Shown one piece after another: positions 1 to 46,476 of a stretch of DNA of 64,000 nt. This stretch comes from Caecitellus pseudoparvulus (lineage: Eukaryota; Protista; Bigyra: Bicosoecida), in assembly GCA_965644315.1 (NCBI GenBank), contig CBFFRQ010000031.1, positions 620,001-684,000 of the forward strand, in the 5' to 3' direction. Each line of letters begins with the position of its first letter. The first letter of the stretch is position 1. The translations under genes were made by a program, and so were the position numbers. The notes below the pieces were generated by a model. The model was not told where the DNA came from. It saw only the letters and a list, made by a program, of their open reading frames with translations, and did not search any database.

Positions 1-3000
1 TCTCTGCCTTATCTTGAAAAGACACAGACAACGCGTCGTAGGCCCACCTCAAGTGCGGCTCCTCGAAGCCAGCAATGGAGTGCAAGGCAGTCACTGCCGG
101 GGAAATACTCACTATGTCTGAGGCAGTGAGGGACGCATTTTCGCTGGGGATGAAAGCCAGTACCCGCCGTATCGATGAAAGTAAAGAGTGCGTGGCCGGC
201 AGAGCACCACGCGTGACAGTCCCGTTGGCGAAGACTGGGCAGCCTGGCTGCGGGCTTCGAAGGCAGCCGTCCAAGAGCAGGAGGGAGAAAGCGAATCCCG
301 TCGAGTCCAAGGGGTGCAAGGTGTCAACCCCCTCGCCTAAATCCAAAGGCACAAACTCTGTGCCTGACACCATTGCTTGCAGTGACCGGAAGGCTGACCC
401 TTGGAGCTCCACTAAGGACCTTTCAGTCTGCACGCGACGAGAACTAGTCGCTTCAGAGAACAACGTTCCGACCGCAATTTGCATGTCCAGCTGAATCCCT
501 TGGCTGCTTTGAGCAAGATAGAGGCGCTGGACGTCTTGCTGGACATCTTGCAAGGTTGTGGTCTCCAAAACGTAGTACACTCCGAGCCAGACGATCAAGG
601 AAGCCACGGGAGCTTGGACCTTCGCAATGGTCCACTGCATCCAGTTCGCGCTGTCACTGCCTGTCCTTCGCTGGGCACCCACTCTAGGCTTTGCATCAGC
701 CCGTGCCGCAGCGTCTGTACCTGCAAGACCCCCTGACCGGCGAAGATGCTTCTTTTTCTTCTCAACTGCAAACAACTGGTCCCAATCAGGCTCCCCCGTC
801 CCATCTTCAACCGACACAGGGCTCAGGACCTGAGATGTGGACTTGCTTTGCTTCTTGTGCCAGTCAGCTTCAACCCCTAGGGCCTGGGAGCTTGGAGCGA
901 GCCTTCCCTCTTCCTCCTCACCCTCCCCGTCAGAGTCAGAGTCACCATGCTCTGAACCGTTGCCGCCCTGCGCAGTGTAGTCTACATCGCCGATCATCTC
1001 ATCTGCAACGCGGCGCAAGTGAGCAGACAGCATGTCTGCCGTCAAGTCGCGCATGCGCCCGGCTGCCGCAGTCGGGACGTCAAGGAAAACAGACAGCGCC
1101 GACAAACGGTCCTGCGCCAAGCGCTTCACCAAGACGAAGAATGCGATTGCAACAGCAATGAACACAACAACAAAAATCGCTGCCACAAACAAAATCGTTA
1201 GGACTTCAAGTCCGTTGAAGTACTCAATGAGGTCGGCAAATTTGTGCTCCATTGACTCATCAAAAGCTGCAGCCTGCGCTGGTTGGTTGGACAAAACCTC
1301 CAGCAGTATAGGGAGAGACGAACCATTTGGAGCAATTTCATCAGCGCTCGCAAAACGAAGCACGTGAAGCCCGGAAAGCAAACTCTCAGTGGCTTCCGCG
1401 GGGTTCATGACAGACGAAGCTCCACCCGACGCAACCCTTGGAATGCTGCGTGTGGTCTCATACGCTAGCTGCTTGCCTCCAAGGATCTGGATGTCAGCGC
1501 TCAGCCGCTCTTTGACGGAGTCCAGTTCCAGAGTTAGGCCTGTGAGCAGTGTGGAGTGGTTCTGGAAAGTCCGGTCTGGGCGGTTGAGTGGGCTGTGCTC
1601 CTGCGCTTGGAGTTGCAAGGCCTTCACTTCCAGCAGCGTCTGGCGCGACAGAATAGCTCGACGTCCCCCGTCATACAACGAGCTGGTGTGCAAGCGACCA
1701 ATGCCAGTCGCGACAAGCTGTTGTGCCATGAGGGCAACAGCGATCACGGGAACGATTGCAAAGAGCGCGTACAAAATGTAGCGCATGCGCATGATGGCAA
1801 GGTCCGTAACCAAGCGCTGTGCGTCGATTACCTTGCGAATCATTGCTGCGTGAGCAGACTTCTTCTGGTCGCGCTGATGCTGTTGCTGGCTTTCAGCATG
1901 AGCCCGCCCCTGCCCTGCCGCCGGTACCTCAGCAACAACTAGCGCATCAGAGCCCTCCGCGGGGCTCGCAACTTGTTTGCTTTCTTTGCTTGGTCGAACG
2001 AGGGGGGTGGAGGGAAGGGGCTTTTCACCAGCCGAGACCAGCTCCAAAGTCAAGGGAGGGGGACCCACAGCCTCCAGGGCAGAAGGCCGAATGGTGCCTT
2101 CCCGAAGCTCGCGCTCTGCCTCCTCCAGAGCGGCCGCCTCAGCAGCTAGGTCTTCGTCGGTTCGCCGCCATTGCAGGACGTAAACAGAACCCCCAAGAGT
2201 AGGCATGGACATAGTCTGCACGAACCCCAAAACTTGCAGGTGGTTCGAGTCATCATCGAAGTCGCCAAACTCGCCTCCCCCACCATCCAGCGCTCCGAAG
2301 TCATCCATCCCCAAACCACCCTCATCGACTCGCACAGGTGTCTTCACGAATGTTGTCGCGTGCAGTAGCGAGTGGTTATTGATGCCATGTGAGACGCCGA
2401 CGGAAGCGCCGGCAGGTCCATGGTAAGCACCACTGCCAGATGTGCTGCGGGATCTGGCCGAGCCCTGCGCCTCGTCGAAGTCCAGCTCGTCCAAGTTTAC
2501 GTAGCCAGGGTGCACCGCGGGGAAGTACGTGATGACACTGGCCCCCATGTCCTCCAACAACTCTGGGTCCGTCCCCATCAGCTCATGTGACGCTGCATCG
2601 GCAGAGAAAATCTGAAACTCCTCGTCCTCGCTGCCAAACAAAATGACATTCTCAGCCACACGCATGGGCTGCAGCACTGCCGCCAGCCGAGGGGACGTGT
2701 CAGACATCGTCGGAGCCGCCTCCTGCATGTGCATGCGGCAGGGCTGGATGTACCCGTTGGACTGCTGCACGAGCACCTGGTGAGTGGAGCCCACGAGCTT
2801 TGCCGACCCTGTGCGCGTGTACCGCAGCAAGAACTGGTCGTGCACCGTGGAGATGGGCTTGGGCATGATGACAGAGATGTTGGAGCCCACCAAGTCAGAC
2901 CTGTTCCGCAGCAGCAAGCGGCAAGCGGCGGAGTTCACCGAGAGAATCTCCCCCACTCGGGACACCTCCGTGGATATCGTGATCATGGCCACGCCCTCCT

Positions 3001-5233
3001 CCATGAAGCCCAGGTCAGGGGCCGGCCCCATGAGGGTGAAGCGTGACACCAGGCTTTCAGCCGTGCGCGCAGCCGCATCAGCCAAGGCATCCGCGCGCCC
3101 CTCCAGCTCGTAAGCCGTCGTGGCGTTGTGCATGAGGGTGCGCTGGAACGCTGCATATGCCCGCAGCACCGAGACGCCCTCTGGGTTCATCGTCAGCAGC
3201 ACCTTGAAGTGCCGCTCTGCATCGTCCAGGTTGCTCCACAGCAGCTCCCCCATGCGCTGCAGCTCGGCCAGATCCGGCACAGGCTCTTGCAGCGCATCCC
3301 ACACCCGCAGCAGTGCGCGGTAGCAGGCTGTCTGGGCGTTGAAAGCCCCCAACAGGCGGCCCTCATACGCCGTGCGGTCCACTGGCGTGATGGCCTTCGT
3401 GCCGGCCACACCCGACCGCAGCTCGCCCGAGGGCAGGTAAGAAGTGTCCATGTCGATCAAGTCCCGGGTGCGCTGGTAGATGAAGAAGGACACGTCTAGG
3501 GGCGCGTTGGACTTGCGTGCGAGGTTCAGAGCATGTAGCTCCATGTACCGTGACGGGTGGGCCAAGCGGAAGTACGTGGCAGCCAGCAAGTGCGCCAGGG
3601 AGGAGGAGGGGAACTTGTCCATCATGGTTTGGTACGCCAGTTCCACTTCAGCAGCCAGGACGGTGGTCATGCGCTCATCCTCTGCGTAGCTGCTGCCCAG
3701 GCGGATGATGACTTGGGAGGCCAAGTGCACGGCAGCTCCTCGAGTGCCAGTGGCACCGCTGACACCAATGGAACGCGCCACGTTGCTGGCAAGGCCCCTT
3801 GTCGATGCCAGAGCACTTTTGCTCCTCTGGCCTCCTCCAGCGTTCCAGTGCTGCCCCATGCTGGCCGTGTCACTGGCATCCTCAGTCAGCTGCTGGTGGA
3901 GCTGCAGGCGGGAGCGCGCCCACAGGTCCACATCGTACAGGCTGTCCAAGTCCTGCAGAGACTGCCGGCAAATCGAAACTCGGCGGTATCGGGCAACGTA
4001 GATGGCAAAGACGAATGACAGAGGCACCCCAATCAGAATCATGGAAGTCAACTGCTGGTCGCTGGCGAGCCGTTCCAACGCTACCCCCAGCATGGCCCAC
4101 GCCATCCCGAAGCCTGCGGCGACCATGACGTCATTCACGGCAGGGTGAATCATGGGGGCGAGACGCAAGTACCCCATGATCCACGCAGCGACCACCGCCG
4201 AGAGTGCGATGATAGTGAACCAGTTCGTGCCCTCCAACGAGAAAGCGTTGAACATGACACTCAAAACTCCCTTGCTGATGAGCAAGGTGACATCCAATCG
4301 ACCTGCGAGTGCAAGTGTGGGAAGAGCGTGTCGGAGTGCAGCTTCCAGGCTATAGCACTGGAGTGCCGTGAAGCAGTTGAGGCGGGCCGCAGGCCACAAT
4401 GCAGGGCACCGCATGCTCACCATGTGTCCGCGCCGCCAACGACCCTGACAGAGGATTGCGGTCAATAAAAACAGCAGCACTCATCATGTAGAGTGGCAGG
4501 GTGCTCACCCAGAGTGCAATGCAGCAGAGGGCAATGGCAAGGTGGCTGCCGGTGTAGCACTGAGTTCCAAACACCGACTGCCCCTCAGTACAAGCAGCTC
4601 CTCGCATGGCGACGTTCAAGAAAGGAAAGGAAAGCAAGGGCATCCCAACTGATGCGATGCTGCGCATCCCAAGAACAACAGCTGCCGGGGCAGGGCGCTT
4701 CAAGCTGCAAGCGGAGAAGGCATGAGAGTGAGCCAGCGCCAGGCGCCTCGACAAGCAGTTACTCAGGGAACGGAGCCGTTGCCGTCAGTGCCCCACTGGC
4801 TGCCACTCACTAGAAGAGCGTCGCTGCATACGCGATGATCATCCACCCAACTGTATTCGCAGCGAAGAACTGCGGCAGCAGGTTGAGGTCAGTGAGGGTG
4901 CGGAGACAGGGGGCGTTTCCTCGCGAGACCACGCACGACCAAGATGGTTACTAGAAGCCCGTCAGAGCCGTACAGCTCATCAACGCGTAGCATGGCAAGA
5001 GCCTGGAGTACAGTCCCAATGACTTCTCCCGCTGGTTCAGTGGACATGAGCAGTCGGAGTGGCAAAGCAAGAAACTGCAGGATGCACACCCCAGTCACGA
5101 CGATGAACAGGGGGCTGGACATGCTGGCATCCTGACCGGCAACATGGAAGGCCTCAAAGACAGCAGATGAGATGAATGATCCCATGCGCTCAGAGAGCGC
5201 CTTGCGGCGCAGGTCACCCGCTTGTGTTGCCAT
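1..5233 (-). CDS. TmcB/TmcC-like multi-pass membrane protein with TPR-like region and PAS domain (paralog A; 3' end runs off the window)
   Basis: ATG at 5233 (MATQAGDLRRK...) and three GT-AG introns (approx. 4871-4936, approx. 4706-4810, 4303-4420). The last exon is absent from the ORF track because it has no stop in the window. Sampled translations are colinear with 18445-24038 (DRNPLS..ARTHGR, the PAS segment, and FEEPHLRWAYDALSVSFQD vs FEREFFRTAFDSLAASFRD). Confidence 0.85.
2458..3796. repeat. Left arm of ~1.34 kb near-identical inverted repeat (partner 19809-21147)
   Basis: Reverse complement matches 19809-21147; paired coordinates sum to 23605. The ORF track shows identical mirrored ORFs, e.g. 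3128..3499+ and 20106..20477-. Confidence 0.97.
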
Positions 5234-5605
5234 GGTCCGCCTTCCAGGCCGCTGCGACCACCTGCCGCCTGGAAGCTGCCACCACTTGCTACGAGAAGAC
5301 AGGCAGACACCAGTATGGAGGAACACATAAGCTTGACGTGGGCTTCCAATCTCGGAGAGACAGTACCACAGAGTCAAGTATGTGCAGAGCAAGCTCTTGC
5401 CTTCGGAGATGCACCCCCCGTCGTTGAGCACGAAAGCCAAGCGGCACAGCTCCGCCTCTTCAAAATTCCACTGTCAGCCCACCTCACCGTATGTTACTTC
5501 CGGCCTCACATTCTCAGCGGTGCTGGGGCTGTAAACGTTGCCTCGTAGGTGCACTAGCCTGCCGTTTCATGTGAAACGCCAGATCAACGCATGCTGCTGT
5601 GAGCC

Positions 5606-7132
5606 ATGGAATACGTTGGTGCCTCCCAAGAGGCAGTGGAGGGCGCACTGAAGGGTCATTTTCGAGACTCCGACCTTAGATTCATCTCCATGAAGGACTC
5701 CCGGCTGGCGGTTGAGCGAGCGCTGAAGATCAAGATCCCCTCGACAAGCAGGCCGTGGCTCAAGCAACTTGTGGTCCGCGTCGCCAATGCCGAGCAGGCT
5801 CGCCGCGACGCAAGAGGCGGCCCGCATCCGAAAGTGCCAGCAGACTCTGCTGTGCTGGCGGCAACCACTTCCTCCCCGCCTTCCCCAGCCAGCCCAAGCT
5901 TTGCTCAGCCAGAACTCTCATATGAGGAAGCGCTGTCCATTGCCCGGAAGCGAAAGTTCAAACAGCTCTCGCCCGCCCTAAGTGCTGTGTGTGGTGGTCG
6001 CAAGGCTGCATCACACAAGCTCATCATTCGGTACATTTGGGAGTACATTCACGGGGCGGGGCTGCTGACACGAGAGAAAACCGTCAAACTGGACCCCGCC
6101 CTGCGAGCTGCCTTCCACGGAAGTGTGGATGAGTCAACGCTTGAAATTTCCACGAAAACCATACCTGGAGCATTCAAACACTCCGTAACTCCTTTTCATG
6201 GAGAGCCTCCTGATGAGGAGGTTAGGCACTTGATGCTGCACCCACCCAAATCCAGCGTGGGCGGGTCGAAGCGGAGCCGTGAAGGGGCTTCCCAAGCTGC
6301 AGGCATGGGACTGCCAGAAGACTTCAAGGAGCTGAAGAAGCCGAGGCAGTACAAAGTGTACCGGATGTCCCCTGCGCTGCAGGCAGTCGTCCCTCCCCAC
6401 CGTGTCGGTGAAGTGCCGCTAACCACTCGCCAGCATGCCATGAAGTGGATTTGGGAGTACGTCAGGGCAGAAAACCTCTTCGAAAATGGTGGTTTCAAGC
6501 CGACACCAAAGCTCACAGCCGTTTTGGGTAGCCCCCGTCCAGATGGCTACATTCCGAGACTCGCCATTGCAAAGGCTCTGTCGGGCCACCTGACTCCGTA
6601 CGATGGTCCCCCTCCGGCTTGGCTGGCAGCAGAAAAAGCAGCCAAATTAGAAGCATATGAGCAACAACAACAACAGCTTAAGGACCTGGGCTTGAAAAGG
6701 CAGGACATCAGGCAACTCTCCGGGAAAGCGCCCAAAGCAGCCAAGCCAAGGAGGTCAGCTGCCTCCGGCCTCTTTGTTCTCGATGATGCGCTGCAACAAG
6801 TCGTCAAACTACGAATAGCGAGCGTTGAAGTGTTATGCAAGGCATTAGAATTACACGCTAGATCGATCTGCGGTGCCACTGACCCCCTTCGCGCCCCCTT
6901 CAAGCCAGACCCCGCCCTGTGCAAGGTCACGGGGTCCTCTGCTCCAGTCACTGTCGGTGGCCTGGAGACCGCGCTTGCTGGCCACATGACTCCAGTCCCC
7001 GCCGACCTCACACATGCCATGGTTTCAGGCATCATGGACAATGAAGGGTTCCAGGGTGTCCCCTTGCGGGAACACATCCAGCGTTGCCTGCAGAGTGACG
7101 TTCACTCCTCGCACTCTACTCATCTGCGATGA
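5606..7132 (+). CDS. DEK-C + SWIB/MDM2 repeat protein (UAF30/TRI1-like chromatin factor)
   Basis: N-terminal DEK-C-like helices. Two clear SWIB repeats (LSPALSAVCG..IIRYIWEYI; MSPALQAVV..AMKWIWEYVRAENL) and a third degenerate one (LDDALQQVV..FKPDPALCKVTG). Confidence 0.8.
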   Translation: MEYVGASQEAVEGALKGHFRDSDLRFISMKDSRLAVERALKIKIPSTSRPWLKQLVVRVANAEQARRDARGGPHPKVPADSAVLAATTSSPPSPASPSFAQPELSYEEALSIARKRKFKQLSPALSAVCGGRKAASHKLIIRYIWEYIHGAGLLTREKTVKLDPALRAAFHGSVDESTLEISTKTIPGAFKHSVTPFHGEPPDEEVRHLMLHPPKSSVGGSKRSREGASQAAGMGLPEDFKELKKPRQYKVYRMSPALQAVVPPHRVGEVPLTTRQHAMKWIWEYVRAENLFENGGFKPTPKLTAVLGSPRPDGYIPRLAIAKALSGHLTPYDGPPPAWLAAEKAAKLEAYEQQQQQLKDLGLKRQDIRQLSGKAPKAAKPRRSAASGLFVLDDALQQVVKLRIASVEVLCKALELHARSICGATDPLRAPFKPDPALCKVTGSSAPVTVGGLETALAGHMTPVPADLTHAMVSGIMDNEGFQGVPLREHIQRCLQSDVHSSHSTHLR

Positions 7133-10100
7133 AGTCTTCCAAATCAGCATACGTATCGCCACCCTCCCCTGCCCCTTCCTCCGCCAGCCAGGCATCTATC
7201 ACCCTGTTCCTGGACCGGGCAGTGCGGGGCCTGACACCGCGCGAGCCGGCAGCGGACGGGCTCTGCGCCGCCGACCCCCGCGGGCGACGGCGCTTCTGTG
7301 CCCCCGACGACTCCCCCAGGCCCTTTCTCGCGATGGAGGGCCGCTTGGGCAGTGGGATCAACCTCTGCAGGCACAATAATGCGGCATCCACCCCGAGCGC
7401 ATTCTGGGGGTTTCGGTCGGCAAGTGTCGGGAGCCTCAGGAGCTCGTCAAGCATCAGTGCCAGCTTGAGAGCTGGTGTTGAGCGCTGTGTCACCAGCCGC
7501 GGGCGACTGCGCCCCTTACTGATGTCAATTCCATCACCTGCGAGCATGCGGTGCATGGTCCACACCCACTGTGCTGTCAGCAACGCACGGAGGTCTGCCC
7601 TGACGCAGCGCTGATCGCCCATAAACGCAATGAGGGTTTCAGCAAGAACGCTCGCTAGGCTGTAAAGCAGCTCACGATGGGCCTTGGGGATCGCCCTAGC
7701 CCATGATGGCCACTTGGGCGTCTGTTCTGCGCCGCTGTCTGAGTCGGTTATGCTGCCTGCGGCTGGTGATGCCGCTGAGGCAGTGCTTGGTACAGCAAGT
7801 GCCGGGTGGGCGATGCGCGCTCGACCCCGGGCATCGTGGCCGGTCAACAACAGCAACTCTGTCCGTGAGAGCGGGTAAGGCGGACTGCCATCATGCTTGG
7901 TGCTGACTTCGTCAAGGAGCCAAGTTGGTGGTGGGCTCGAGAAGGCTTTCTCTAAAGTGGCGGGCGTTGCGGTCGCGAGTGCGGCCAACACGTCAGCATC
8001 TGTATCGGCGTGGCACAGCACTTCCAGCCCATCTGTCACCCGACCATAGTCATGGCAAGCATGAATACAATCCATCATGGAAGCGTGGAGCAAGAAAGGC
8101 AGACTCTCTGGCTCGTGAGAGGCTGTGTGGAAAAGAGCGTACCTGTACTCCATGACGGAGATGCTGGCCATCGCCTTTGTCGCGTTTTCAGCAGAGGACA
8201 GTTGCATGTTGGTCATCGCCTTTCCCATGCAAAGAGGCACCGCGAAAAGCGGTTTCCTGGGGGGCTCAAGCGATGTGAACACGTTCACGCGGCCAGACAA
8301 CGAAGGACCAGAAATGGACACGACAGGTCCAGTGGAGGTCACGATCACGCCCTCACCGATGATTCGCCCCTGCATACCCCAAGTTGAACAGCGAAAGGCC
8401 GCGCGGAACAACTCACGTAACGTGTGAATGTATAGCGTGCTATCCCCTGTGCAATGCCATCCAGCCCTTGCCACGGCCAACAACGCCGTGACCATTCCCT
8501 TCATTGGGTTCCCGAAAGGAACAGGAAACTCCTGCAAGCAGCGGCGCAGAGCCGAAACGGCAACTACGTGTGCTGCCTGTGGGAAGTCAGTGTACGACTT
8601 GCTGGAGCACTTCAGAGTACAGTCACTTGCGCCCCAGGTGAAGTGGTCCTTTGGTTCCACGACGTGCCTCAATGGTCGGTAGTGGCATTGGGGTGTGGGC
8701 ACACGCTTCCGATTGAGAGCCACATGCTCAGATGCTCGAACAAGGTACACACAAAAGCGGTGGAGGATGTTGGCAGGGAGGCCTTCGCACATGCATCCGT
8801 ACACCATAAGCGCTACCGGAGCCATGGGGAGGGCTTCCGCAACTTCCTCGCTCTGCGGGTGGGCTGCCAAACACTGCACCAATATGTCGAGGCACAAATC
8901 CAGCGCAGCATGCACTGCCTCCCCTTTCATGTCGTCCTGCGCTCCGCGCACAGCACTCAAGCTGTCTGCCAGGTGAGGGAGTGGTGCCACAGCAAGGGGA
9001 TCGGGTGTTGCTGGAAGTATCCGCTCCGCCTGCGGGCCACCTCCAGGCAGTGATTGAGGAGAAAAGTGGTCCGGGAGCCCACCCCTACAATTGAAAGCAC
9101 TATGATCAGGCAAATCCCGCAAGCAAGAGAGTGTGTGCAAGAGCTGGGAGACGTCCAGGATGGCTGACGCCGCCTGAGCTTCGGTAGTGGCCGAGACGGC
9201 CAATCGCAATCCCCTCAATGCCGACAGCAGTGGCGGCAATGCGATGGCCGAGCCCTGCTTCATCGCATGCACTGCATGTTGAATCATTTCAAGGGAGAAA
9301 TCTGACGCCATCTCAAGATTCGGCAGCGTTGGCGATGGAACAGGGGCGTCGGACGCAGAAGGCGCGACAGTAGTAGGCGACAGCGCTGACTGTGCCATCC
9401 AAAAGTGCAGCGTCGAGCGAGCCAGGGGGTCGTGATCGTCCCTCTCAGAGGAAGCAGGGATGCTTAAGCGGTGCCAGGCGTCACTGTGCGGAGAATCCAC
9501 GCTAAAGTGGCAGAAGGCACTCAGTGACAAGGCATCGTACCGCATGCAGTCCAGGCTCGCGACGATGTCCAAGCACCGCCAGAGAAGTGACACCTCTGAT
9601 GCGGGCCCTGGACTCCTGGAAAGGAAGGAAAGGATCATCGCGAACGAGCTCTTCACCAGTGCCAAAACGGCGTCATGGGGGGGAGCGGTGCGCCCAGCAG
9701 CGTCACCTGCGCTGAGCCAGGTTGCAAGCGTGCTTGAACAAGTGCCACGGCTCAAGAAAGAAAGGGCTGCAGCTTCAAGGGCGCGGCTCCAAGAACACCC
9801 ATGCAAGATTAAGAGCGGCCATGTTCCCAGCACCCATTGTGGTTCGGAGTCAGATGCAGCGGATGTAAGGAAGCACTCTGTGGACCATGCCGGTGGAGGA
9901 TCGAGAAGCCAGACACGGATGGCTTCCGCCCACGGGCTTCCTTCTGAAGCACGAACAGCTGGCTGGCGGCTACCTACCACGCCTTGAATACAAATGGGCA
10001 GCTTGGCTGCGACTGCTGTGCAAGCCTGCCAATTAATGGCCTGGGGTGAGAGAGGCTCCGCGACTGCGGAAATTGGTTCTGCAGCACACCTCAGCGCTGT

Positions 10101-10286
10101 CTGTTGAGCGAGTTTGGCCAAGTTTGGGGGCAGAGGTGGTAGGCTAGGGGGGGGATGATTTACTAGACTGAACAGAAGCACGCTTGTGGTCGCATCTTGC
10201 CACGGTGACACACATGAGCGGCGCACCTCACTTTCTGCTCCTGCCGCGCCGCCTGCGCCAACAGGGACAGAGAGCGCTGTGGCCAT
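7116..10286 (-). CDS. Hypothetical protein, 1056 aa, probably helical, with an acidic C-terminal motif
   Basis: Long uninterrupted ORF; no family recognised; ends RSRNRVIDAWLAEE..DTYADLEDFIADE. Confidence 0.7.
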   Translation of the reverse strand: MATALSVPVGAGGAAGAESEVRRSCVSPWQDATTSVLLFSLVNHPPPSLPPLPPNLAKLAQQTALRCAAEPISAVAEPLSPQAINWQACTAVAAKLPICIQGVVGSRQPAVRASEGSPWAEAIRVWLLDPPPAWSTECFLTSAASDSEPQWVLGTWPLLILHGCSWSRALEAAALSFLSRGTCSSTLATWLSAGDAAGRTAPPHDAVLALVKSSFAMILSFLSRSPGPASEVSLLWRCLDIVASLDCMRYDALSLSAFCHFSVDSPHSDAWHRLSIPASSERDDHDPLARSTLHFWMAQSALSPTTVAPSASDAPVPSPTLPNLEMASDFSLEMIQHAVHAMKQGSAIALPPLLSALRGLRLAVSATTEAQAASAILDVSQLLHTLSCLRDLPDHSAFNCRGGLPDHFSPQSLPGGGPQAERILPATPDPLAVAPLPHLADSLSAVRGAQDDMKGEAVHAALDLCLDILVQCLAAHPQSEEVAEALPMAPVALMVYGCMCEGLPANILHRFCVYLVRASEHVALNRKRVPTPQCHYRPLRHVVEPKDHFTWGASDCTLKCSSKSYTDFPQAAHVVAVSALRRCLQEFPVPFGNPMKGMVTALLAVARAGWHCTGDSTLYIHTLRELFRAAFRCSTWGMQGRIIGEGVIVTSTGPVVSISGPSLSGRVNVFTSLEPPRKPLFAVPLCMGKAMTNMQLSSAENATKAMASISVMEYRYALFHTASHEPESLPFLLHASMMDCIHACHDYGRVTDGLEVLCHADTDADVLAALATATPATLEKAFSSPPPTWLLDEVSTKHDGSPPYPLSRTELLLLTGHDARGRARIAHPALAVPSTASAASPAAGSITDSDSGAEQTPKWPSWARAIPKAHRELLYSLASVLAETLIAFMGDQRCVRADLRALLTAQWVWTMHRMLAGDGIDISKGRSRPRLVTQRSTPALKLALMLDELLRLPTLADRNPQNALGVDAALLCLQRLIPLPKRPSIARKGLGESSGAQKRRRPRGSAAQSPSAAGSRGVRPRTARSRNRVIDAWLAEEGAGEGGDTYADLEDFIADE

Positions 10287-10374
10287 CTGGCTATGCAGAA
10301 GTGCCGCAGTGGGCGTGTGCCATGATCTGGCGGAGGACAGCCAGGAGACAGAGTTTGCATTTTTTCCTGTCTAC

Positions 10375-12128
10375 TTAGACAGCAGCGCGGGCAAGTGCAG
10401 CATTGAGGAACTGCACAAACATGTCAGCGTTGCCTTGTATGGAGTCCGCACGGGTCATGTCATCCTGGCTGACCCGACCAGCGGCCAGAGACATGAACTG
10501 AACACGCATGCGCTGAATCTCCGCGGGGCTGGTGCGCCTCGCCAACTTGAGCGGCACACATGCGGGGGGAACACTCAGCTCGTCTCCGAGGCTAGCCGCA
10601 GGAAGTGCAGCCGTGGCAGCCTTTGACACGGCAAGAGTTGCCCTGTCAATGGTGTGAAGCAAATGAGAAGCCTTGGTATTCGTCTTGCTCGTTGAAGCAG
10701 TTTGCGCCAGCTTGCTTCCACAAATGGTGTCCAAGATGGCTTCTAGAATGCTCACCTTGTGTCCAAGCGGTGTCTTTGCCTCAGGCGCTGGGTGTGAGCC
10801 TGCCGCGCTCGGCACCGAAGCGGTTTGAACAGTGGGGATTGCAGCAGAAGGCTCATGCTTGGCCATGCTGCTGGAGTCGCCTTGTGAGGGCACTGAAGTC
10901 ATGCTCCCGGCGTCGCTGCGTACTGCGCCGCCGCAGGAGGAAACAGACTCGGCATCATCTTCCACACTGCCCCCATGCTCCTCTTCAGGAGCTACCACGG
11001 AAGGAGCTGCCTGCTTCTGGGCCCTCTTGAATGCAGATGTTCCCACCGCACGCCTTTGGACGACCGGAGCAGCTCCAGCACGCTTGAACGCGGACGTGGC
11101 AACGCCTCCCGGCCCAGCGCCCCCAGGAAGGAAGGCAGCTGGGCGGAGCTGAAAAGCCTTAGAGCCTGTGCTGGACAGCTTCGCGAGATTGGAGCTTGCA
11201 TCGCTCTCCGATGGGGCCTCTTGCTGCTCCCCCGACATGTGGGTCACTTGAGACCCTACGTGCACAACCGACCAGCCGCCGCCAGCACCGTCCCCTGACG
11301 CGACGATGCGGACACGGTCCAGAGTGGCACCTGACGGCGCAACGCCAGAGGATGTTGCATAGGCAGCTACTTCATCCGCATGGAGCTCTCCTGGGGCTGC
11401 AGAAGCCGCAGCGGTGCCGTGGGAAAACACAGCAGCACCAACTGCGGCCGCATGCTTGGAACCGGGATGGGCTGCGGCCAATGCTCCCCCATTCGCCTGC
11501 TCAGTCGAACAAATGACACGGAAAAGCGGCGAATCCCAACGCTTGCTTTCATCGGGCACTTCAAAACGGGATGCCAGCTCCCTCATAACCGCCGCCGGGT
11601 ACGCTGCGCTGGGGGACCGAGCAGCATTCCATTCCAAGCTCAAGGTGGGCGGGGCGTCAACCCACACCTGTGAAGACGCAGCAAGCATCACAAGGCTATC
11701 TATACGTGGTTACTTCGTTGGCGGTGTGTGAGTGGGCTGCTCATGACGTACAAGTGCGAAAGAAGTCTGGTGTTCACGGGCGTAGCAGTGGAGCTGGTAC
11801 CTATACCCGCTGATCAGGTTCAGCGCATCCAAAACCACAGTGGCGCCGCCGGACAACTGCCGGTATGCTTCTGACATGAGAGCTCCTCTTGTCTGCTTCT
11901 CAGCGGCAGGGTCTGCACATTGTAAGCGATGTGGGCGTAAGCCTTGCTCTTCGCAAACGTGGCACGCCTCCTCGCACCAGAGTATGCTGTGGCAGCGGAG
12001 ATTCCCAAAGCTTCCACGTTTACAAGGACAGCAGAAACATCACCCCTAGTCGACAGAAAATCCACCAAATCCTCAGCGAAGCGAGTCTTGCCCACGCATG
12101 GCCGCCCGGCAACCACAATGAGGGGCAT
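10375..12128 (-). CDS. KTI12: KTI12 (Elongator-associated, PSTK-like ATPase)
   Basis: Exons 12128-11978, 11912-11752, 11667-10375. MPLIVVAGRPCVGKT P-loop, VLDALNLISGYRYQLHC, RFEVPDESKRWDSPLF and the C-terminal helical domain. Confidence 0.92.
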
Positions 12129-12308
12129 GGCAAACCCAGTCCGAATTCCGCACCCTCACACGGCCCCTCAAAAACAGTCGGCCGCACCCTCGCAGCGTGA
12201 GGCAAGGCTGTTCTCTACATTCCCTGGCGCATGTTTGAATTTGGGAAAGAAGGCCTTCCACTGTCAGTGCTCTGAAGGCAGGCAGGAGAACCGCTCCTGC
12301 CTTCAGGC

Positions 12309-12315
12309 AAAAAAA
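12309..12315 (-). terminator. RNA polymerase III terminator (T7) of the tRNA gene
   Basis: Seven T on the minus strand starting 3 nt after the tRNA discriminator base. Confidence 0.75.
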
Positions 12316-12317
12316 CT

Positions 12318-12391
12318 TAGCGATGACGGGTATCGATCCACGTTACCTCCAGCTTATGAGACTGGCGCGCTATCCATTGCGCCACATCGCT
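12318..12391 (-). tRNA. tRNA-Met (CAT), atypical initiator/elongator hybrid features
   Basis: Cloverleaf AGCGATG TG GCGC AATGGATA GCGC G CCAGT CTCATAA GCTGG AGGTA ACGTGG ATCGATA CCCGT CATCGCT A, with a perfect 7-bp acceptor stem and CAT anticodon. Confidence 0.9.
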
Positions 12392-12899
12392 TGACCTGAT
12401 GCATGTCGTGAAGAATCTAGTGTATAAAAACCTATGCAGCATCACCTGCCAAGGAGGCCTGTGGAGCCCCCCGCCGCATCGTCTCTGCACACTCGATAGA
12501 GCTCTCTTTCTTCAACACACCACTCCAGCTGATAGCGATCTGGCTTCTTGCCGTCGTGCGCCTCCATACACCTGCGCAAAGAGCCGGGGCACTGTCAACC
12601 TGCGGATATTGGTGCTCTCAGGCCACTTACTCGATGTAGGTCTCCAGTTGACGCTCACAGGGATTTCGGGGTGTCCACCAGCGACAAGCCCGAGTGTCGC
12701 CGTACTCAATGACGTCCAAGATGCAGTTCTTGCAACGCTTCCAAGCCTCCATGGTGCGCCGTGGCACGGCTATGCCGTGGGGCTGGCTTCTCGATCAGCG
12801 AGCACAACGAGACACTCTGGACGAGGGAGGCAACCGGGGGGGGGCTGAGACGCGTGGAAGAAGCACATGCTGGCCGCCTGGTGCTGTTTTGCATTTGAG

Positions 12900-15800
12900 T
12901 TACTTCCACTCTTCGGCGGCCCGCAGCTGCACCATTTCAGCGGCCACAGCGAAGGGGGACACAACCTCCCTTGTGGTATCGCGAGGCGGGCCGGATGGGG
13001 CTCCCTGGCCTTCACCGGATGATGCGGCGCCGGCATGGCGTTGCTGCCCGGCAATACTGCGCATGGCAACACGAGCCTCCGTCACTGCGCCAGACACTGC
13101 TGCAGCAAACCCTGTGACGGCACAGTCTGCGCCACGCAGCGCTCGCGAGGCAGCTTGCAACGCATCTGTGGCTCCTTCATCCACAAATGCTGCTACCATG
13201 CGCCCGCAGTGCAACTTGTTGGCCTCTTGAGCTGTCTGTAGGTCTGATAACCACTGATCTTGTAAGTGAAGACTCGATGGCAATGCCGAGGCTATGCTGC
13301 CCTGCACAGCTCTGCCGGGTTCCCTCAGCGCCCAAGGGACGGCTGACAAATCTGCCAATCGGAGCCTCGCCCATGCACCTGCATCTTCTCCATTGTGTGG
13401 AACCACTTCAAGCAGCTGGCTGGCCCAAGGGGGCTTAGCTTCTCGTGCTTCGGCCTGGCCTGCCCCATTGCCTGTGTCCGTGGACTCTTCCAATGCGCTG
13501 GTCGTCGATCTGGAGCTGGGCATGCGGATGCTATCAAGATTGGCAACAGCAGCTGCAAAAGGGGACTTTGCCGCTGAACGCCCTGAAGGAGGGGGTGGGG
13601 CACTTGAACTGCCCCACCGGACGGGCGGCGGAGGGCTGCTCAGTGGTGGGACTGGGACTCGAGGGACGCTCGGGCTGGGTTGCAATTCAGGTGGGGAGCT
13701 ATTCGGGAGGTTGGAAGCCCCATCACTTGCTCCGCTTGGGGCACTTCTGTGTGACTGAAGCAAGGCCTGGGTGCGGGTTTGGTTAACGTGCGGCGACAGT
13801 GCGTCCAGGGCACACACAGCCCCAAAAGCAGACACTTCTGGAACTTCACTGCGCAAGAAACGGGCCAGAAGCGGGACTTGCCAAGGTTTCCACTGCACTC
13901 CAAGTGTCCTCGGCCCGAGCCTCTTGGTAGCTGCTGCCGCTTCGAGGTTCGCACCGCAGCGACCCGCCTCCGCCTCCAACACGGCGGTACGAATGCTCAC
14001 TGACGCAGGTGCTTCGACTTGTCGCTGACAAAAAGCCACGAGCCATAGGGTCCCGTGCCCAAGGAGGCGCCTTGCTTGGCGAGCTTGCTCAGCGTTGTGG
14101 AGGATGGTCGGCCACCCTTCTTGCGTGAGCGAGGCACTGCGAGACATGGAAGGCTGCCGAATTGGGGATTGCGGTGAGGCGGCACTGTGCGGGGTCGCAA
14201 AAGTACTTGGTGAGGCCAACAAAGGGTTTCCAGCTAGAGCGGTTGCGGGAGCCTCTGAAGCGGCCTTTTCGGCTGACAAAGGAGCCTGTGGAGCCGCAAG
14301 CTGTACGGGGGCAACGTCGCACAACGCCTCGGCCACGACAGCCAGCAAGAACACCATGGTGGGCGGCTCTTCTTGCCAAATGCGAGCCTGTGGTGCGGGA
14401 CCAGCTCTCTGTGGCTGTCGCGCTGGGGAAGGTGGCTGTGTGACTGGCTGTGTTGGGGTTTCCGAGCCACGGGGTGCCAGAGGAGGAGGCGGCTGTGCAG
14501 ACTCCGTTGACACTTCGTCGAACCGCACGGTTCCCCGGCGGCGAGTTGCAAGCTGCGACGTTATCTCGCTGACGCTGTCAAGGATGGAAGACACCACGGG
14601 GGGTAGCGACGTCGAGGAGTGCGTGGCAACCTCCCCCTGGTTGCCACCCACTTCTTCCTCGGGCTGCGTGCAGTCTCCCGTGAACATGCCCTCCTCCCAC
14701 AGCAGGCGAAAGACGTACAAAGATCGAGCCTTGAGGACCTGGGGATCTGTTGTTGTCGCGTGGCTCATGACGGTGTCCGCCACACTGAAGACGCTGTCCC
14801 CGTCTCCCGGCGACGCCGGGGATACCGGTGGGCCTCCCTGCGCACTCGCGCGGAAGGAGCGGGAGCTACCAAGCCGCTGTCCGCTTCCCGCTCCTGTGAC
14901 GACAGACCAGGCATTTCTGGCCACAGTGTGCATCGCCCGCCACAGAAGCGGCGCTGCTCTTCGCCGGGCCGCGGCCGTTGCCTGCACGTCCCTGCACAGC
15001 ACCAAGTCAAGAAGCCGATCGAAGAGAGGCAAAGTCTGGCCGACAGACAGACTTCGAGCTGCCGCGATTGCGCGCTCGAGCAGCGAAACGGCCAGCAGCG
15101 CCTGCACGGAGGCATCAGTGGTCTGCTGTTGGAGCTTGCTCCAGACCCCTGCCTCAGCAGTCGCTCTGGAACCGGCGAGAACCGTCACAATGCGCCTGGC
15201 TGCAGCACTCGCACCCGAGACTTGCTTTGCTTCCCAGGCTGCACGAGCTTCAAGGGCCAAGTCTGGTTCATGGACACACCCGGACGCCCACTGCGCATCG
15301 CTTGGGGGACCCAGGCGGCGCCCCTGCAACTGCTGGGCAGCTCCCCACCTTTGGTGAGCCCCTTGCTGGTGAAGCACAGTCAGCAAGGATCCTATGCACC
15401 CTGAAACCACCATCACATCTCTAGCCTCTCGGCGCTCCAAAGTGCTCAGTGTGGCCACGCAGAGGCTCAGGAGTTGCACTGGCACGACTCCCAGTCCGCC
15501 TGGGGCACTGCCGGAACGCGCCAATGAGCCCACAGCATCTCCCAAGGCCAAGAACGCCCCATGACTGATCAAAGCAGTGATGCACTCCCCAGATGTTTGT
15601 GCGATGGCCATCAGTGCGTTCGCGCAATGAAGCGCGACCTGTGGGTCGTCCTCCCAGCGCCGAACGCAGCGCAGAAGGGCAGGCACAGCGGGACTGCTGG
15701 AGGCCACGGTCACCCGGATGGCATCATCTGGGCAGCTGCATGCCACTTTGAGCAGAGAGGCTGCCATGCCCCTCAACGGCGCATGCTCGAGCTGCCGGCC

Positions 15801-16283
15801 CAGGAGCTCGGCAAGACTGGAAGGGAAGTCCACCTCGCGCAACTGCTGAGCAGTAGCAGAGCTTTCCGCGCCATAGCAAGCAAGTAGGAGTGTGCCGGAG
15901 GCGAGCCTCACTGCTAGGTCTTGAGAAGACGCCAAGAATATCCCCGCTGCTTCCTGCAGTCGACCTGCCGTGCTCACGAAAGCCGCGCACAGCCGAGAAT
16001 CCGAGGCAATCACAAGCAGCTCAGACTCCTTCACCGACTGCAAAGTCTCCGGCTTCTTCAAGCTGCCATAAAGCAAAGATGTCACGAACTTCTCACCATA
16101 CGTCTCCAGGGTCCGTTCCAGGGCCGTTGCAGCGCCGGCCTCACCACCAAAGTGATGCTCCCATTGCCGTTGAGCAACGATTCGCCGTGCTGCGTCATCC
16201 GAACTGAGGTCCGCGAGCCACTGCCTCCACTGAACACCGCCCAGCTTTTCTTCAGATGGAGGTTTGCTGGAACAACAACCCAT
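12900..16283 (-). CDS. Armadillo/HEAT-repeat-like protein with N-terminal MGCC acylation motif
   Basis: Long ORF with first ATG at 16283 (MGCCSSK). ARM-like segments (AVPALLRCV, VALHCANALMAIA, GCIGSLLTVL). The 3' end may be extended by splicing at GTAACT near 12903. Confidence 0.7.
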   Translation of the reverse strand: MGCCSSKPPSEEKLGGVQWRQWLADLSSDDAARRIVAQRQWEHHFGGEAGAATALERTLETYGEKFVTSLLYGSLKKPETLQSVKESELLVIASDSRLCAAFVSTAGRLQEAAGIFLASSQDLAVRLASGTLLLACYGAESSATAQQLREVDFPSSLAELLGRQLEHAPLRGMAASLLKVACSCPDDAIRVTVASSSPAVPALLRCVRRWEDDPQVALHCANALMAIAQTSGECITALISHGAFLALGDAVGSLARSGSAPGGLGVVPVQLLSLCVATLSTLERREARDVMVVSGCIGSLLTVLHQQGAHQRWGAAQQLQGRRLGPPSDAQWASGCVHEPDLALEARAAWEAKQVSGASAAARRIVTVLAGSRATAEAGVWSKLQQQTTDASVQALLAVSLLERAIAAARSLSVGQTLPLFDRLLDLVLCRDVQATAAARRRAAPLLWRAMHTVARNAWSVVTGAGSGQRLGSSRSFRASAQGGPPVSPASPGDGDSVFSVADTVMSHATTTDPQVLKARSLYVFRLLWEEGMFTGDCTQPEEEVGGNQGEVATHSSTSLPPVVSSILDSVSEITSQLATRRRGTVRFDEVSTESAQPPPPLAPRGSETPTQPVTQPPSPARQPQRAGPAPQARIWQEEPPTMVFLLAVVAEALCDVAPVQLAAPQAPLSAEKAASEAPATALAGNPLLASPSTFATPHSAASPQSPIRQPSMSRSASLTQEGWPTILHNAEQARQARRLLGHGTLWLVAFCQRQVEAPASVSIRTAVLEAEAGRCGANLEAAAATKRLGPRTLGVQWKPWQVPLLARFLRSEVPEVSAFGAVCALDALSPHVNQTRTQALLQSHRSAPSGASDGASNLPNSSPPELQPSPSVPRVPVPPLSSPPPPVRWGSSSAPPPPSGRSAAKSPFAAAVANLDSIRMPSSRSTTSALEESTDTGNGAGQAEAREAKPPWASQLLEVVPHNGEDAGAWARLRLADLSAVPWALREPGRAVQGSIASALPSSLHLQDQWLSDLQTAQEANKLHCGRMVAAFVDEGATDALQAASRALRGADCAVTGFAAAVSGAVTEARVAMRSIAGQQRHAGAASSGEGQGAPSGPPRDTTREVVSPFAVAAEMVQLRAAEEWK

Positions 16284-16733
16284 GGTGCAGACGTTCTGGA
16301 CAGCAGACACCCACGCCTCCCCTCTCAAGCTGCTGGCGATGAAACGCTGGTGCAACGCACGCAGCTCGTCACCCAGGCAAGCCTCCAAGGCTCAGGAAGC
16401 AAGCCCAACAGAAGAAAATCAGAGCAAGCTCTTAATTGGGATGGGGGGGGGCGCACTCAAGCAGGTATGGGCAACTGGGTGGTGTAAGATGTACGATTTC
16501 AATAGCATTGTCGAGGGCTGGCTTGTCTGGCGCCCCACCAGACCAGACCGCAGCAGCCAGTCGCCGCGCTTCCCGCAAGCATTGCGGGAAACCCAGGCAC
16601 CACACACACTTGCAAAACACACACACTTCACTCGCACGCACACCACCAAGTTCAGTCTCATGCCCCTTTCAGAAGCAACACCCTACCTCCAGGTCAGAAG
16701 GCAGGCACCCTGTGTGGGTTGAAGGAGCCGCAT

Positions 16734-17977
16734 TCACAAGCCTGCCCTTCGCTTGGCAATGGGCTGAGCACATGCCGGTTTCTCTCGCTGACGCTTGCTG
16801 CCCCCCGAGCGGGGCTCAAATGCCCGCGGCTGCTCATGGCAGCACCTGTGGCAGGTCACCGCCGCGGCCTCCAGCGCAAGCTGGCCTTGCACGGCAGCAC
16901 GGGCAGGGACGCCAAGGGACGCGCAAGGGGGCCCCTCCGCCTCCCGCCTATCACACTCGACTTCCCCAATGCCAAAGGTCTCGGGCTCACAGGAGCTGCG
17001 CCCAGTGCTGGCTGTCTCGGGCGCAGCTCCAGCTGCTCCGTGTGCCTTGGTGTGCACAGGTGAGCTGGAGAAGACACTCTCAGACAAAGGCGTGGCCAAG
17101 CGCCAGTGCGTGCTGCCCTTTGGAGTGCCTGCATCTGTCCCGAAGTGACTGTGGTTCAGAAGCGCCCCGGAGGGGTGCCTAAGTGCGCCCCCTGACCACT
17201 TACTGGTGGAGGGCGGGCTTAGCTCGCCCCAACTTCCGCTCCACCCGCTGGTGGTCGCCGGGTTCCCCAGCGGAAGCCGGCAAGGCATACCAGCATGGCC
17301 GAACGCGCCACCAGCTGCAAGGGGCATGGGGGGGAGGGCTACCGACATTTGCCAGGGAACAGAGCCTGGCGGGGAGGGGCCGTGGAAGCGGGGCACCCTA
17401 CCGTGCCGTGCGTGAGCCGGGTGTGCCTGGGAAGCTGTTGGCGTAGCGCCAACCACACGTGGCACCCCAGCCACGCAGTCCCGCCGCACCGCCGCGTACT
17501 CGGGAGCAGACGCGTCGTGGTCCTTCCATTGCGCAAAGTAGTTTCGAAGCTTTGTCTTGGGATATCGAGCAACAGCTGCAAAGTCTGCCTTCAGGCGCTT
17601 CCACTCTGCCGTTCCGCTCGGCCCGCAGCGGTACCGGGAGGAGAGGATGAGCTGATCCCACACCACCACCTTGGCTTCAGGGGTCAGCGGGCCAAGAAAA
17701 AGGTTTGGGTTGAGCTTCTCTGTCCACTCATCGCGGACTCGAAAACGTGCCTTCGGGCTGCGCACACAGAGCAGGAGGGGCTGTGCTGGTGCCTCTCCCC
17801 AGCAGCGCAGCGCAGGCTGCAATGGGGGGCACTCCCCACGTACCTCAACCCCAGCAGTCGCGCTAGGTCAGACCAGGGAGTGCGAGACGTGGTCGTGCGC
17901 ACAAAGTGCACAATGAACGCCTTCTGCTCTGACGAAAAGCGCACTGGCGCGCTTCGAGATCCCTTGGAACCAGGCAT
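16734..17977 (-). CDS. Divergent R2R3 Myb-like transcription factor
   Basis: Exon 1 17977-17844, GT-AG intron 17843-17758, exon 2 to 16734. Spliced product RFSSEQKAFIVHFV..PWSDLARLLGLSPKARFRVRDEWTEKLNPNLFLGPLTPEAK..EWKRL..KLRNYF follows two-repeat Myb spacing. Confidence 0.7.
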
Positions 17978-18444
17978 GATGAGTTTCCTGGAATGGGGCC
18001 TTTCCGTGACAACTCTCCACGCATGCAAGGTTGAAGCTCGTGCGCAAAAGCCAGCAATGGCATCCACTTACACTGCTTGTGCATGCAGAGTAGTAGCGGA
18101 GGGTAAAGGGTGCTGGGCGGGTGAAGAAAATTGATGTGCCGGCAGAAGTTCCTCCGCGTGCTCAGAGAACCGCGTGTGGAGCAACGGCATTCGCTGCCCC
18201 GCCAGGGCCACCCCCCCCCAACACCCCTGCTAGAGCCCGAGCCTGACGTCCGGCACGGCAGCGTCTCTTCCAAACCGCAAAACTGCCTGAGTGCAAGAGG
18301 GCTGACAGCAGGCTGTGTAGTTGGGTCAGATACTTGGTCTCTTACCCGCCAGGAACCGCTAAGCTCTGCGAACCGCGCTGTCAGCGAGTGAAAGTCCCGC
18401 ACACCTTTGGGTTGCCGCGACGCTGGGCGTCACCCACTGGCACC

Positions 18445-21400
18445 ATGTCCGGCAGCGGCGAGTTGCAACGCAAGGGGGTGCTGGAGCGTGCATTTGGCAG
18501 CATCCTGAGTTCCCTCTCTTCGTCCGTGTATGTGGCCAGCCACGATGCAGCTCTGTCAACGCCAGTGTGGGTGGCCCTCACCTTGATCCAGTACCTTCAG
18601 TTTCTCTACTTCCCTGTTGCTCTGATGTTGGGAGGCGGGCAGACGACTCAGATTCTGACCCTGGTGCTGAAGGTCACATCCCTCACTCGCATTGATGAAG
18701 AAATTGGCCCACTTGGCTTCATTGTTGTCACGGGCATCGTGAGTGCTGCCTCGCAGGCGCAGACGGGGACGCCGGTCGGCACACGAGCCGCGTTTCGCCA
18801 ACACCAGCTCCAACCCATGAGCTCACCATCTCCCAACTCTGCAACCCTACCGACCTGAACCCGTGCACAGATCTTTGCCATTAACTTCTCCATTGCCTTC
18901 ACTATGCAGCTGACGAGCTACTTCACCTTGTGAGTACTGCGACGCGCCGGCGGCACCTCTGGCCTGGCCCGTGCTTTCAACCCACCTCTTCCTCCCCGTA
19001 CGCTTGCCACAGCCACAACAAGCCTGTTCCGGGGGTTCTCGCAAGTGTCAATAGGCTCATGCAGGTTGTGGCCCCCACGGTGCTGTTCCTGCCCCTGCAG
19101 TCTGTCATGCTTCGCGCGGCTACGTGCATCCAAGGCAACACAGCCTTCGGGCTACCCTGCTACGAGGGTGTGCACATCGCGATTGGAGCGCTTGCCATCG
19201 GATTCTGGACAACCACTATCGGCATGGCAATTGGCATGGTGGCCACTTTCCTGGACCGCAACCCGCTGTCTCGGTCCCTGGGGGCCAGATCCCACGGCCG
19301 AGTGGAAGCGGCCCTTCTCTTCTCCAAGTCCATCCTCTGCGTCATGTTCAATAGCTTCGAACAGAGTGGCACGAATTGGTTCTCAGTCATCGTTCTTGTC
19401 GCGGTGGTCGCTGCGTGGATCATGGGGTACCTGCGTCTTGCCCCCATGATTCACCCTGCCGTGAATGACGTCATGGTCGCCGCTGGAGTGTCCCTGGGGT
19501 GGGTCATGCTAGGCGTGGCCCTGCAACGAGTCGTGACAGACCAAGACCTCACCTCCATGATTCTGATTGGGGTGCCTCTGTCTTTCGTTTTCGCCGTCTA
19601 CCTGGCAAGGTACTCTCGTATCACGCTGTGCCGGCAGTCTCTGCAGGACTTGGACAGCCTGTACGATGTGGACCTGTGGGCGCGCTCCCGCCTGCAGCTT
19701 TTTCAGAAGCTGCAACTTGACGTGGAAGAAGGCTCCCGAGTGAGGGACCGATGGTCAATGCGCGAAAGTGGAAGTCAAGCTGGAGCAAAGGCCGCACTCA
19801 AGGGCACAGGCCTTGCCAGCAACGTGGCGCGCTCCATTGGTGTCAGCGGTGCCACTGGCACCCGAGGTGCTGCCGTGCACTTGGCCTCCCAAGTCATCAT
19901 CCGCCTGGGCAGCAGCTACGCAGAGGATGAGCGCATGACCACCGTCCTGGCTGCTGAAGTGGAACTGGCGTACCAAACCATGATGGACAAGTTCCCCTCC
20001 TCCTCCCTGGCGCACTTGCTGGCTGCCACGTACTTCCGCTTGGCCCACCCGTCACGGTACATGGAGCTGCATGCTCTGAACCTCGCACGCAAGTCCAACG
20101 CGCCCCTAGACGTGTCCTTCTTCATCTACCAGCGCACCCGGGACTTGATCGACATGGACACTTCTTACCTGCCCTCGGGCGAGCTGCGGTCGGGTGTGGC
20201 CGGCACGAAGGCCATCACGCCAGTGGACCGCACGGCGTATGAGGGCCGCCTGTTGGGGGCTTTCAACGCCCAGACAGCCTGCTACCGCGCACTGCTGCGG
20301 GTGTGGGATGCGCTGCAAGAGCCTGTGCCGGATCTGGCCGAGCTGCAGCGCATGGGGGAGCTGCTGTGGAGCAACCTGGACGATGCAGAGCGGCACTTCA
20401 AGGTGCTGCTGACGATGAACCCAGAGGGCGTCTCGGTGCTGCGGGCATATGCAGCGTTCCAGCGCACCCTCATGCACAACGCCACGACGGCTTACGAGCT
20501 GGAGGGGCGCGCGGATGCCTTGGCTGATGCGGCTGCGCGCACGGCTGAAAGCCTGGTGTCACGCTTCACCCTCATGGGGCCGGCCCCTGACCTGGGCTTC
20601 ATGGAGGAGGGCGTGGCCATGATCACGATATCCACGGAGGTGTCCCGAGTGGGTGAGATTCTCTCGGTGAACTCCGCCGCTTGCCGCTTGCTGCTGCGGA
20701 ACAGGTCTGACTTGGTGGGCTCCAACATCTCTGTCATCATGCCCAAGCCCATCTCCACGGTGCACGACCAGTTCTTGCTGCGGTACACGCGCACAGGGTC
20801 GGCAAAGCTCGTGGGTTCCACTCACCAGGTGCTCGTGCAGCAGTCCAACGGGTACATCCAGCCCTGCCGCATGCACATGCAGGAGGCGGCTCCGACGATG
20901 TCTGACACGTCCCCTCGGCTGGCGGCAGTGCTGCAGCCCATGCGTGTGGCTGAGAATGTCATTTTGTTTGGCAGCGAGGACGAGGAGTTTCAGATTTTCT
21001 CTGCCGATGCAGCGTCACATGAGCTGATGGGGACGGACCCAGAGTTGTTGGAGGACATGGGGGCCAGTGTCATCACGTACTTCCCCGCGGTGCACCCTGG
21101 CTACGTGAACTTGGACGAGCTGGACTTCGACGAGGCGCAGGGCTCGGGCCGCTCGCTTGGCTCGGGACCTGGAGGAGCTGAAGGTGCCGCCGGGAACAGC
21201 AACCACTCGCTACTGCATGCCAGCACGTTCGTGAAGACACCTGTGCGGGTCGAAGATGCTGTCGGGGGTCTTGACATGTTCGATGATGTGGGCGGTCAGC
21301 CTGAAGCTGGCTTGTCTGGCTTTGACGACGAAGATGGCAGTATTAAACACGTGATGGGATACGTCCAGACGCTGCACATGCCCATCTTTGGAGGAAATGT

Positions 21401-46063: not shown

Positions 46064-46476
46064 GGCTTGTTGAAGCTTGAGGGGGGTTTCAGGGGCAGTC
46101 GGCCAGGCCCCCCACTGTCAAATGTCACCTTTGAGGCCCTGCTTTTGGGTACGGCATGTGCCCAGGCGACGGGCCAGCCAAGCACTGCTGGCGCCAGGGC
46201 AAGGGGCTTGGACGAGGGGGGGGGATGCTCAGCGTGCAGCAAGTTGAGCAATGCAGGAAAACTCACAAGATCAAGCTTGGAGTTGCCTCTGGCGCTTCTT
46301 AATGTGCCCCGTCCCGGCGTTCTGCCCCCACACGGTCCTCAGTGCCTGGCAGCGTGTCCAGCAAACTCCGCACCACCACAGTCTTGCAGCGCAGCTGCAC
46401 CAGGGAGGCCGCCGGGAACGCTGAGGAACACGGCGAGCTTCGTACTACACCCTCCACCTACACTACACGCTTAGGC

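Follow-up and report, generated by a model that had tools for sequence, protein, structure and literature searches.

Near the left end of a 64,000-nucleotide stretch of the Caecitellus pseudoparvulus genome (contig CBFFRQ010000031.1, positions 620,001 to 684,000 of the forward strand; hereafter, the window) lie two receptor genes, A and B, which are strongly diverged along most of their length and almost identical over an internal core of 1,339 bp. We conclude that this identity probably results from an ordinary process, interlocus gene conversion that recurs between old inverted paralogs. The source is a marine eukaryote with an assembly of 30.6 Mb in 215 contigs, and its genome codes for more than 20 members of this receptor family.

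Two diverged receptor genes share a near-identical core

Genes A and B are arranged back to back and transcribed in opposite directions, away from each other (Table 1). Both code for TmcB-like proteins: N-terminal transmembrane (TM) blocks are visible in hydropathy, and behind them lie a TPR_TmcB domain (PF25474; 49 bits against a Pfam cut-off of 27) and then a PAS region, whose match is weak and below the cut-off of the hidden Markov model (HMM), but which is FixL-like by fold. A nucleotide repeat search together with BLASTN identified one long inverted pair in the window, 2451-3796 and 19809-21154 (99% identity), within which 2458-3796 and 19809-21147 form the ungapped near-identical block. 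The two arms can be aligned colinearly and in frame across 446 codons, and they differ at seven positions (3773, 3743, 3737, 3536, 2951, 2789, and 2498), all of them synonymous; the proportion of differing nonsynonymous sites (pN) is 0, that of synonymous sites (pS) is 0.021, and the synonymous divergence (dS) is also 0.021. With 25% of sites synonymous, seven out of seven would arise by chance with p 7e-5, so the differences are not sequencing errors.

The edges of the core are very sharp, with an A-B dS of 0.02 inside and >2 in the flanks; it is >2 or saturated in the N-terminal, post-core, and distal parts, where protein identity is mostly 25-60%, and has an intermediate value (0.86) in the TM block directly before the core. 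Additional identical runs of 17-71 bp each lie beside the core, on motifs that are conserved in a related species' homolog too. A preliminary description of the window, made from its letters alone, had proposed two TmcB-like PAS receptors with these starts, arms differing by about seven synonymous substitutions on a TPR-like and PAS core, and diverged TM and C-terminal parts; the gene models, Pfam matches, folds, and divergence estimates agree with all of these, and exactly those seven positions were recovered.

In a structure model built from 16 family members, a helical domain is followed by two folds, the first a PAS and the second PAS-like and broken by two low-confidence loops; the best fold matches are the heme PAS domains of FixL and DosP. 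A linker with indels immediately precedes the tract, whose other end falls near model residue 424, within the first low-confidence loop (414-442) of the second PAS-like fold, where A and B carry indels; on this predicted structure, the tract edges track alignability, not module borders. The first PAS (window 20570-20940 on the plus strand, and its mirror in gene A) has a His in the helix that binds heme in FixL, and these receptors may sense oxygen through heme.

Homogenization is real, recent, and present in other strains

Repeat-aware assemblers can homogenize near-identical copies, and a single event could produce one long tract, so we weighed whether the core might reflect an assembly or polishing artefact, or else a single very recent partial duplication (one replacement) instead of repeated conversion. 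In Logan contigs of three strains (X1, X3, and X4), which are distinguished by 0.2-0.7% single-nucleotide polymorphisms in their unique flanks and were compared with one arm only (<6,000 letters), the core forms a single 1,339-bp contig, exactly 2458-3796, with a depth of 180 against 78-83 in the flanks in one strain, 30 against 18-20 in another, and 103 against 53-59 in the remaining one. The same unit at about twice the depth in three strains indicates that both copies and their boundaries are real and do not stem from assembly; the 71-bp patch at 3900-3970 is likewise collapsed at about twice the depth in other strains. Errors, moreover, would not be synonymous at all seven positions. A single event is hard to reconcile with the patches of different ages that flank the tract, or with an allele state at position 3773 that varies among strains, and we regard either form of this explanation as very improbable.

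The state at 3773 can be read from the way the contigs end. In four read sets the A-side flank contig begins at 3767 and the B-side contig meets the core at 3796, an overlap of 30 letters, which with 31-letter words implies that both copies share one letter at 3773 in those strains. A and B would thus be alike at this site there and different in the window, suggesting that the conversion state varies among strains. Clustering of copies by strain is visible at this one site only, the contigs being unphased and dropping bubbles; one strain also has a new core allele at 3749. For four unique genes between the arms, compared between the window and four other samples, allelic pS is 0.011-0.018, and the A-B pS in the core is close to this range, which argues that conversion is recent or ongoing.

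Conservation of the core in a related species

Database searches used single-exon references only, and spliced models were used just for local alignments and trees. A related species, represented by Ga0307982, ERZ27316688, and SRR8862141, codes for a full-length homolog (P0002/P0004/P0005, loci L037-L039) whose core is assembled without a break in three short-read assemblies, and we therefore conclude that it has no near-identical twin. Its core has ~80% amino acid and ~75% nucleotide identity to the shared A/B core (dS ~1.0), and in most of the flanks its protein identity to A and B is 30-55%. There are 84 core columns in which A and B agree and are unlike the homolog, and none with the reverse pattern. 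The core is thus natively conserved, but conservation accounts for an identity of only ~80%, not 99.5%. GC-biased conversion was also considered and rejected; GC content at third codon positions (GC3) is 0.80-0.81 in the core, yet it is 0.81 in the twin-less homolog as well, and core GC3 is thus no evidence for such a bias.

In a tree of the distal C-terminus, A and the related species' homolog form a group (support 98/98), and the grouping of A with B is rejected (approximately unbiased test, p-AU 0.027), with outgroups that are distant and partly truncated. In the N-terminal tree the homolog falls weakly with B (72/41), and a grouping of A with the homolog is not rejected (p-AU 0.30). The third intron of gene A, which lies upstream of the core, is present in the homolog, whereas B and 12 more distant members of the family lack it; it looks like a gain, with B and the twelve other members reading through its codon. 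The homolog also lies upstream of Cnd3, the gene that follows A in the window. The simplest reading of these comparisons is that the homolog is orthologous to A before as well as after the core, with a duplication that predates the species split, in which case A and B are probably old paralogs, older than the split from the related species. We also considered whether the related species' gene might be a chimera with the N-terminus of B and the C-terminus of A, and did not adopt this reading; the N-terminal tree does not settle it, the derived intron belongs to the A type, and gene order is scrambled between the species.

Homogenization in pairs that cannot invert

Other paralog pairs of the family were compared over 4-5 kb of each gene. 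A same-strand pair on contig C44 (L015/L017), 279 kb apart, is 95.7% identical over 1,038 nt of the TPR-PAS core and ~69% identical outside it. A tandem pair on C86 (L012/L013, ~7 kb apart) has blocks of 98-100% identity with unalignable linkers between them, and a head-to-head pair on C94 (L031-L034, C94:201715-211395) is 98.5% identical over >3.4 kb and diverged towards the ends; the search also matched a third copy at C94:217071. A head-to-head pair on C13 has no nucleotide similarity in the compared stretches, which indicates that proximity and inversion alone do not yield homogenization. A crossover in the C44 or C86 pair would delete DNA, so homogenization there must be by non-crossover conversion, and the family-wide pattern, as judged from these alignments, needs no inversion.

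Possible inversion of the segment between the arms

The preliminary description had noted that inversion between the arms would leave the enclosed genes intact, and the frame and colinearity of the two arms bear this out: as a geometric possibility only, a crossover within them would invert 16 kb and produce two in-frame chimeras. Its larger proposal, a shufflon-like swap system, is unsupported, the core being homogenized also in the same-strand C44 and C86 pairs; it is weakened further by a tract end in mid-domain, by the lack of a recombinase in the scanned open reading frames (ORFs), and by the pairing of the A-type intron with the A-type C-terminus in the related species. Its minimum claim of recent gene conversion emerges strengthened, with a core dS of 0.021 against saturated flanks and a core pS near allelic values, and the collapse or polishing artefact that it had named as a possible refutation is largely refuted by the core contigs at about twice the depth and the all-synonymous differences.

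A programmed or high-frequency switch of the shufflon or flip/flop type would exchange the N- and C-terminal modules of the receptors inside a single clone. The boundaries are identical in all strains seen, as such a switch would have it, and the size and layout of the locus resemble those of the 19-kb mating-type inversion of Ogataea (PMC5720833). However, each gene keeps its own start and upstream region in both orientations, so no on/off logic is evident; similar homogenization is seen in pairs that are unable to invert; and three linked differences remain at the 5′ edge of the core, with the boundary lying within a domain. A Pfam scan of 18 ORFs of the window, which did not cover every ORF or the rest of the genome, revealed no recombinase domain, and no short site-like element was noted by eye at the arm ends. 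Homology-driven switches need no recombinase. Taken together, a programmed switch seems to us most improbable.

A milder possibility is that inversion is a by-product, with a few conversions resolving as crossovers, such that the 16-kb segment flips on an evolutionary timescale without regulation and some strains carry chimeric receptors (A-N/B-C and B-N/A-C). The geometry permits a flip without loss, conversion is frequent enough to keep paralog divergence at the allelic level, and this mechanism has been proposed for the Saccharomyces FF region (PMC9731477); in the related species, the orientation of a small gene relative to Cnd3 is that of the opposite isomer, and the homolog leans weakly to B at its N-terminus and firmly to A at its distal C-terminus. 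The N-terminal grouping is nonetheless ambiguous by p-AU; the derived third intron of A, upstream of the core, occurs in the related species too, so that its gene is paired as A-N/A-C, just as in the window; gene order between the two species is scrambled; and the 1.3-kb arms are one third the length of the 4.2-kb FF repeats. Nor did we find a chimeric full-length protein or contig, the protein matches comprising one close cluster (P0002/P0004/P0005) and one distant protein, although short reads could not show one. No contig spanning the core and both flanks was found, the Logan contigs breaking at both core ends, and the inner-segment contigs of samples L035, L036, L040, and L041 (99.2% identical) all end at the short patches at 3916-4169 and do not reach the core. 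A search for fragments with the core alone returned none, which is uninformative on absence, and a metagenome search returned one locus, on the same contig as the related species' homolog. We consider by-product inversion unlikely, although clearly less so than a programmed switch. Equally doubtful is that a naturally recurring intragenic inversion exchanges the promoter and N-terminal membrane block, which would give populations with four receptor types from two genes.

A proposed model of domain-restricted conversion

Our preferred explanation remains recurrent interlocus gene conversion, and we infer the following steps. A break in one core would be repaired from the other copy by non-allelic homologous repair and resolved without a crossover. 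Purifying selection on the shared TPR-PAS sensor would keep the core conserved and free of indels, and hence still able to pair, such that conversion persists just in this strongly conserved stretch and halts at the indel-rich, low-complexity linkers on either side. Linkers that gained indels would have escaped conversion and would now delimit the tract, making its boundaries self-limiting. The outcome would be a pair of receptors that differ in their membrane and outer parts and have a cytoplasmic sensor in common, although any functional meaning is conjectural.

Several points weigh against this explanation. Non-crossover conversion and occasional crossovers stem from the same repair events, and inversions are thus compatible with it. 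Short-read contigs pop bubbles, so that most A/B differences within the other strains are invisible, and the orientation of the C44 pair rests on one assembly. In the related species, the small gene found at ~12.5 kb in the window sits upstream of the homolog at a distance of 1.3 kb and points in the opposite direction relative to Cnd3, as the opposite isomer would predict, indicating that some rearrangement of the region has happened. Synteny with the related species is scrambled, however, in that gene X has moved (it lies between the receptor and Cnd3 at L038:9269-12249, and upstream of gene B here), the long ORF is absent, and the next gene is on another contig; one flipped marker thus proves little, and we count it as a hint only.

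The locus offers a clean case of concerted evolution restricted to one domain block. Within one receptor family of this genome the pattern recurs in four or more paralog pairs, one of them separated by 279 kb. This suggests that ectopic conversion is active in this protist, and short-read assemblies and gene trees of these receptor genes mislead. If both orientations exist, this would be a rare eukaryotic recurrent inversion that reshuffles protein halves and does not just move genes.

Other features of the window

The SWIB-domain gene and the 1056-aa ORF are convergent, with 3′ ends that overlap by 17 nt, and a word search found no homolog of the SWIB protein outside the source species. Beyond gene B, a 1278-aa ORF (24597-28433, plus strand) without a Pfam match contains tandem arrays of 30-nt and 51-nt units at 24612-26951, and two of the arrays with 30-nt units, near 26146 and 26545, are 98% similar to each other. 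At 44098-48360, two RabGAP-TBC genes have a head-to-head arrangement, and no nucleotide repeat was found between them. A tRNA search across the window with ARAGORN (bacterial settings) returned nothing.

Table 1. Coordinates of the receptor genes, shared tracts, and enclosed genes (window positions unless a contig is named)
Feature	Position	Strand	Remarks
Gene A, TmcB-like multi-TM receptor, 1740 aa	1-5233	-	ATG 5233; end ~280 nt beyond window start
Gene A introns	4870-4936, 4705-4810, 4303-4420	-	Spliced model
Third intron of gene A	4303-4420	-	Common to related species' homolog; not in gene B
Left arm, putatively converted core	2458-3796	-	Helical TPR_TmcB domain, FixL-like PAS1, first half of PAS2
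Right arm, putatively converted core	19809-21147	+	Gene B codons 384-830; 7 synonymous differences from left arm
71-bp identical patch	3900-3970	-	Partner 19629-19699; on conserved post-TM motif
Short identical runs 4017-4045, 4116-4159, 4169-4198	within 4017-4198	-	Partners within 19401-19582; TM block
Short identical runs 2331-2350, 2361-2377	within 2331-2377	-	Partners 21201-21247; next conserved PAS2 strand
Segment between arms, 16,012 nt	3797-19808		Both 5′ gene halves, promoters, and enclosed genes
SWIB-domain gene	5606-7132	+	
1056-aa orphan ORF	7116-10286	-	
KTI12	10375-12128	-	
Small spliced gene	near 12470-12600	-	82% identity over 40 residues to related species
Long ORF	12900-16388	-	
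Gene X	about 16734-17940	-	
Gene B, TmcB-like paralog, 1792 aa	18445-24038	+	ATG 18445, stop 24038
Gene B introns	18739-18870, 18930-19012	+	Same positions as gene A introns 1 and 2
C44 pair (L015/L017)	C44:315355-316392 and C44:36609-37646	same strand	Differences mostly synonymous

Comparison with known systems

In bacterial shufflons and hsdS-type loci, inversion between repeats within coding sequence yields in-frame chimeras, typically through a site-specific recombinase that acts on short sites. Inversion between the A and B arms would likewise yield in-frame chimeras from repeats within coding sequence, but here the arms are long homologous coding sequences and no recombinase was seen in the scanned ORFs. 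Among eukaryotes, the mating-type flip/flop of Ogataea polymorpha (PMC5720833) involves a 19-kb segment, comparable in size, between inverted repeats; nitrogen starvation induces the inversion and a gene is moved under centromeric silencing, whereas neither induction nor a silencing logic is seen here, and one orientation only.

Closer in gene content are PfRh2a and PfRh2b of Plasmodium falciparum (PMC6289454), head-to-head paralogs coding for protist membrane proteins that have a long identical coding stretch and different C-termini. They share the 5′ 8 kb, however, such that a flip makes no new protein, whereas only the middle is shared by A and B. In the FF region of Saccharomyces chromosome XIV, gene-containing inverted repeats are homogenized through conversion within species and enclose ordinary genes (24 kb in FF, 16 kb here), and, as here, orientation is unresolvable by short reads. 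About 4% of FF conversions are said to resolve as crossovers, and the region flips on evolutionary, not laboratory, timescales (PMC9731477). The FF repeats, 4.2 kb long, include entire genes, so that a flip leaves all proteins unchanged, and both orientations are known; by contrast, the repeat described here is internal to two genes, such that an inversion would exchange protein halves, and the A/B locus has been seen in one orientation only.

The HMA4 paralogs of Arabidopsis halleri form an interlocus conversion mosaic (bioRxiv 10.1101/2025.10.29.685298), and the A/B locus is a member of this known class. Both are sets of neighbouring paralogs in which the conversion rate varies within genes and leaves a mosaic of identical and diverged blocks. 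Unlike HMA4, the A and B copies are old, with saturated flanks, and they are inverted, 16 kb apart, and bounded by very sharp block edges.

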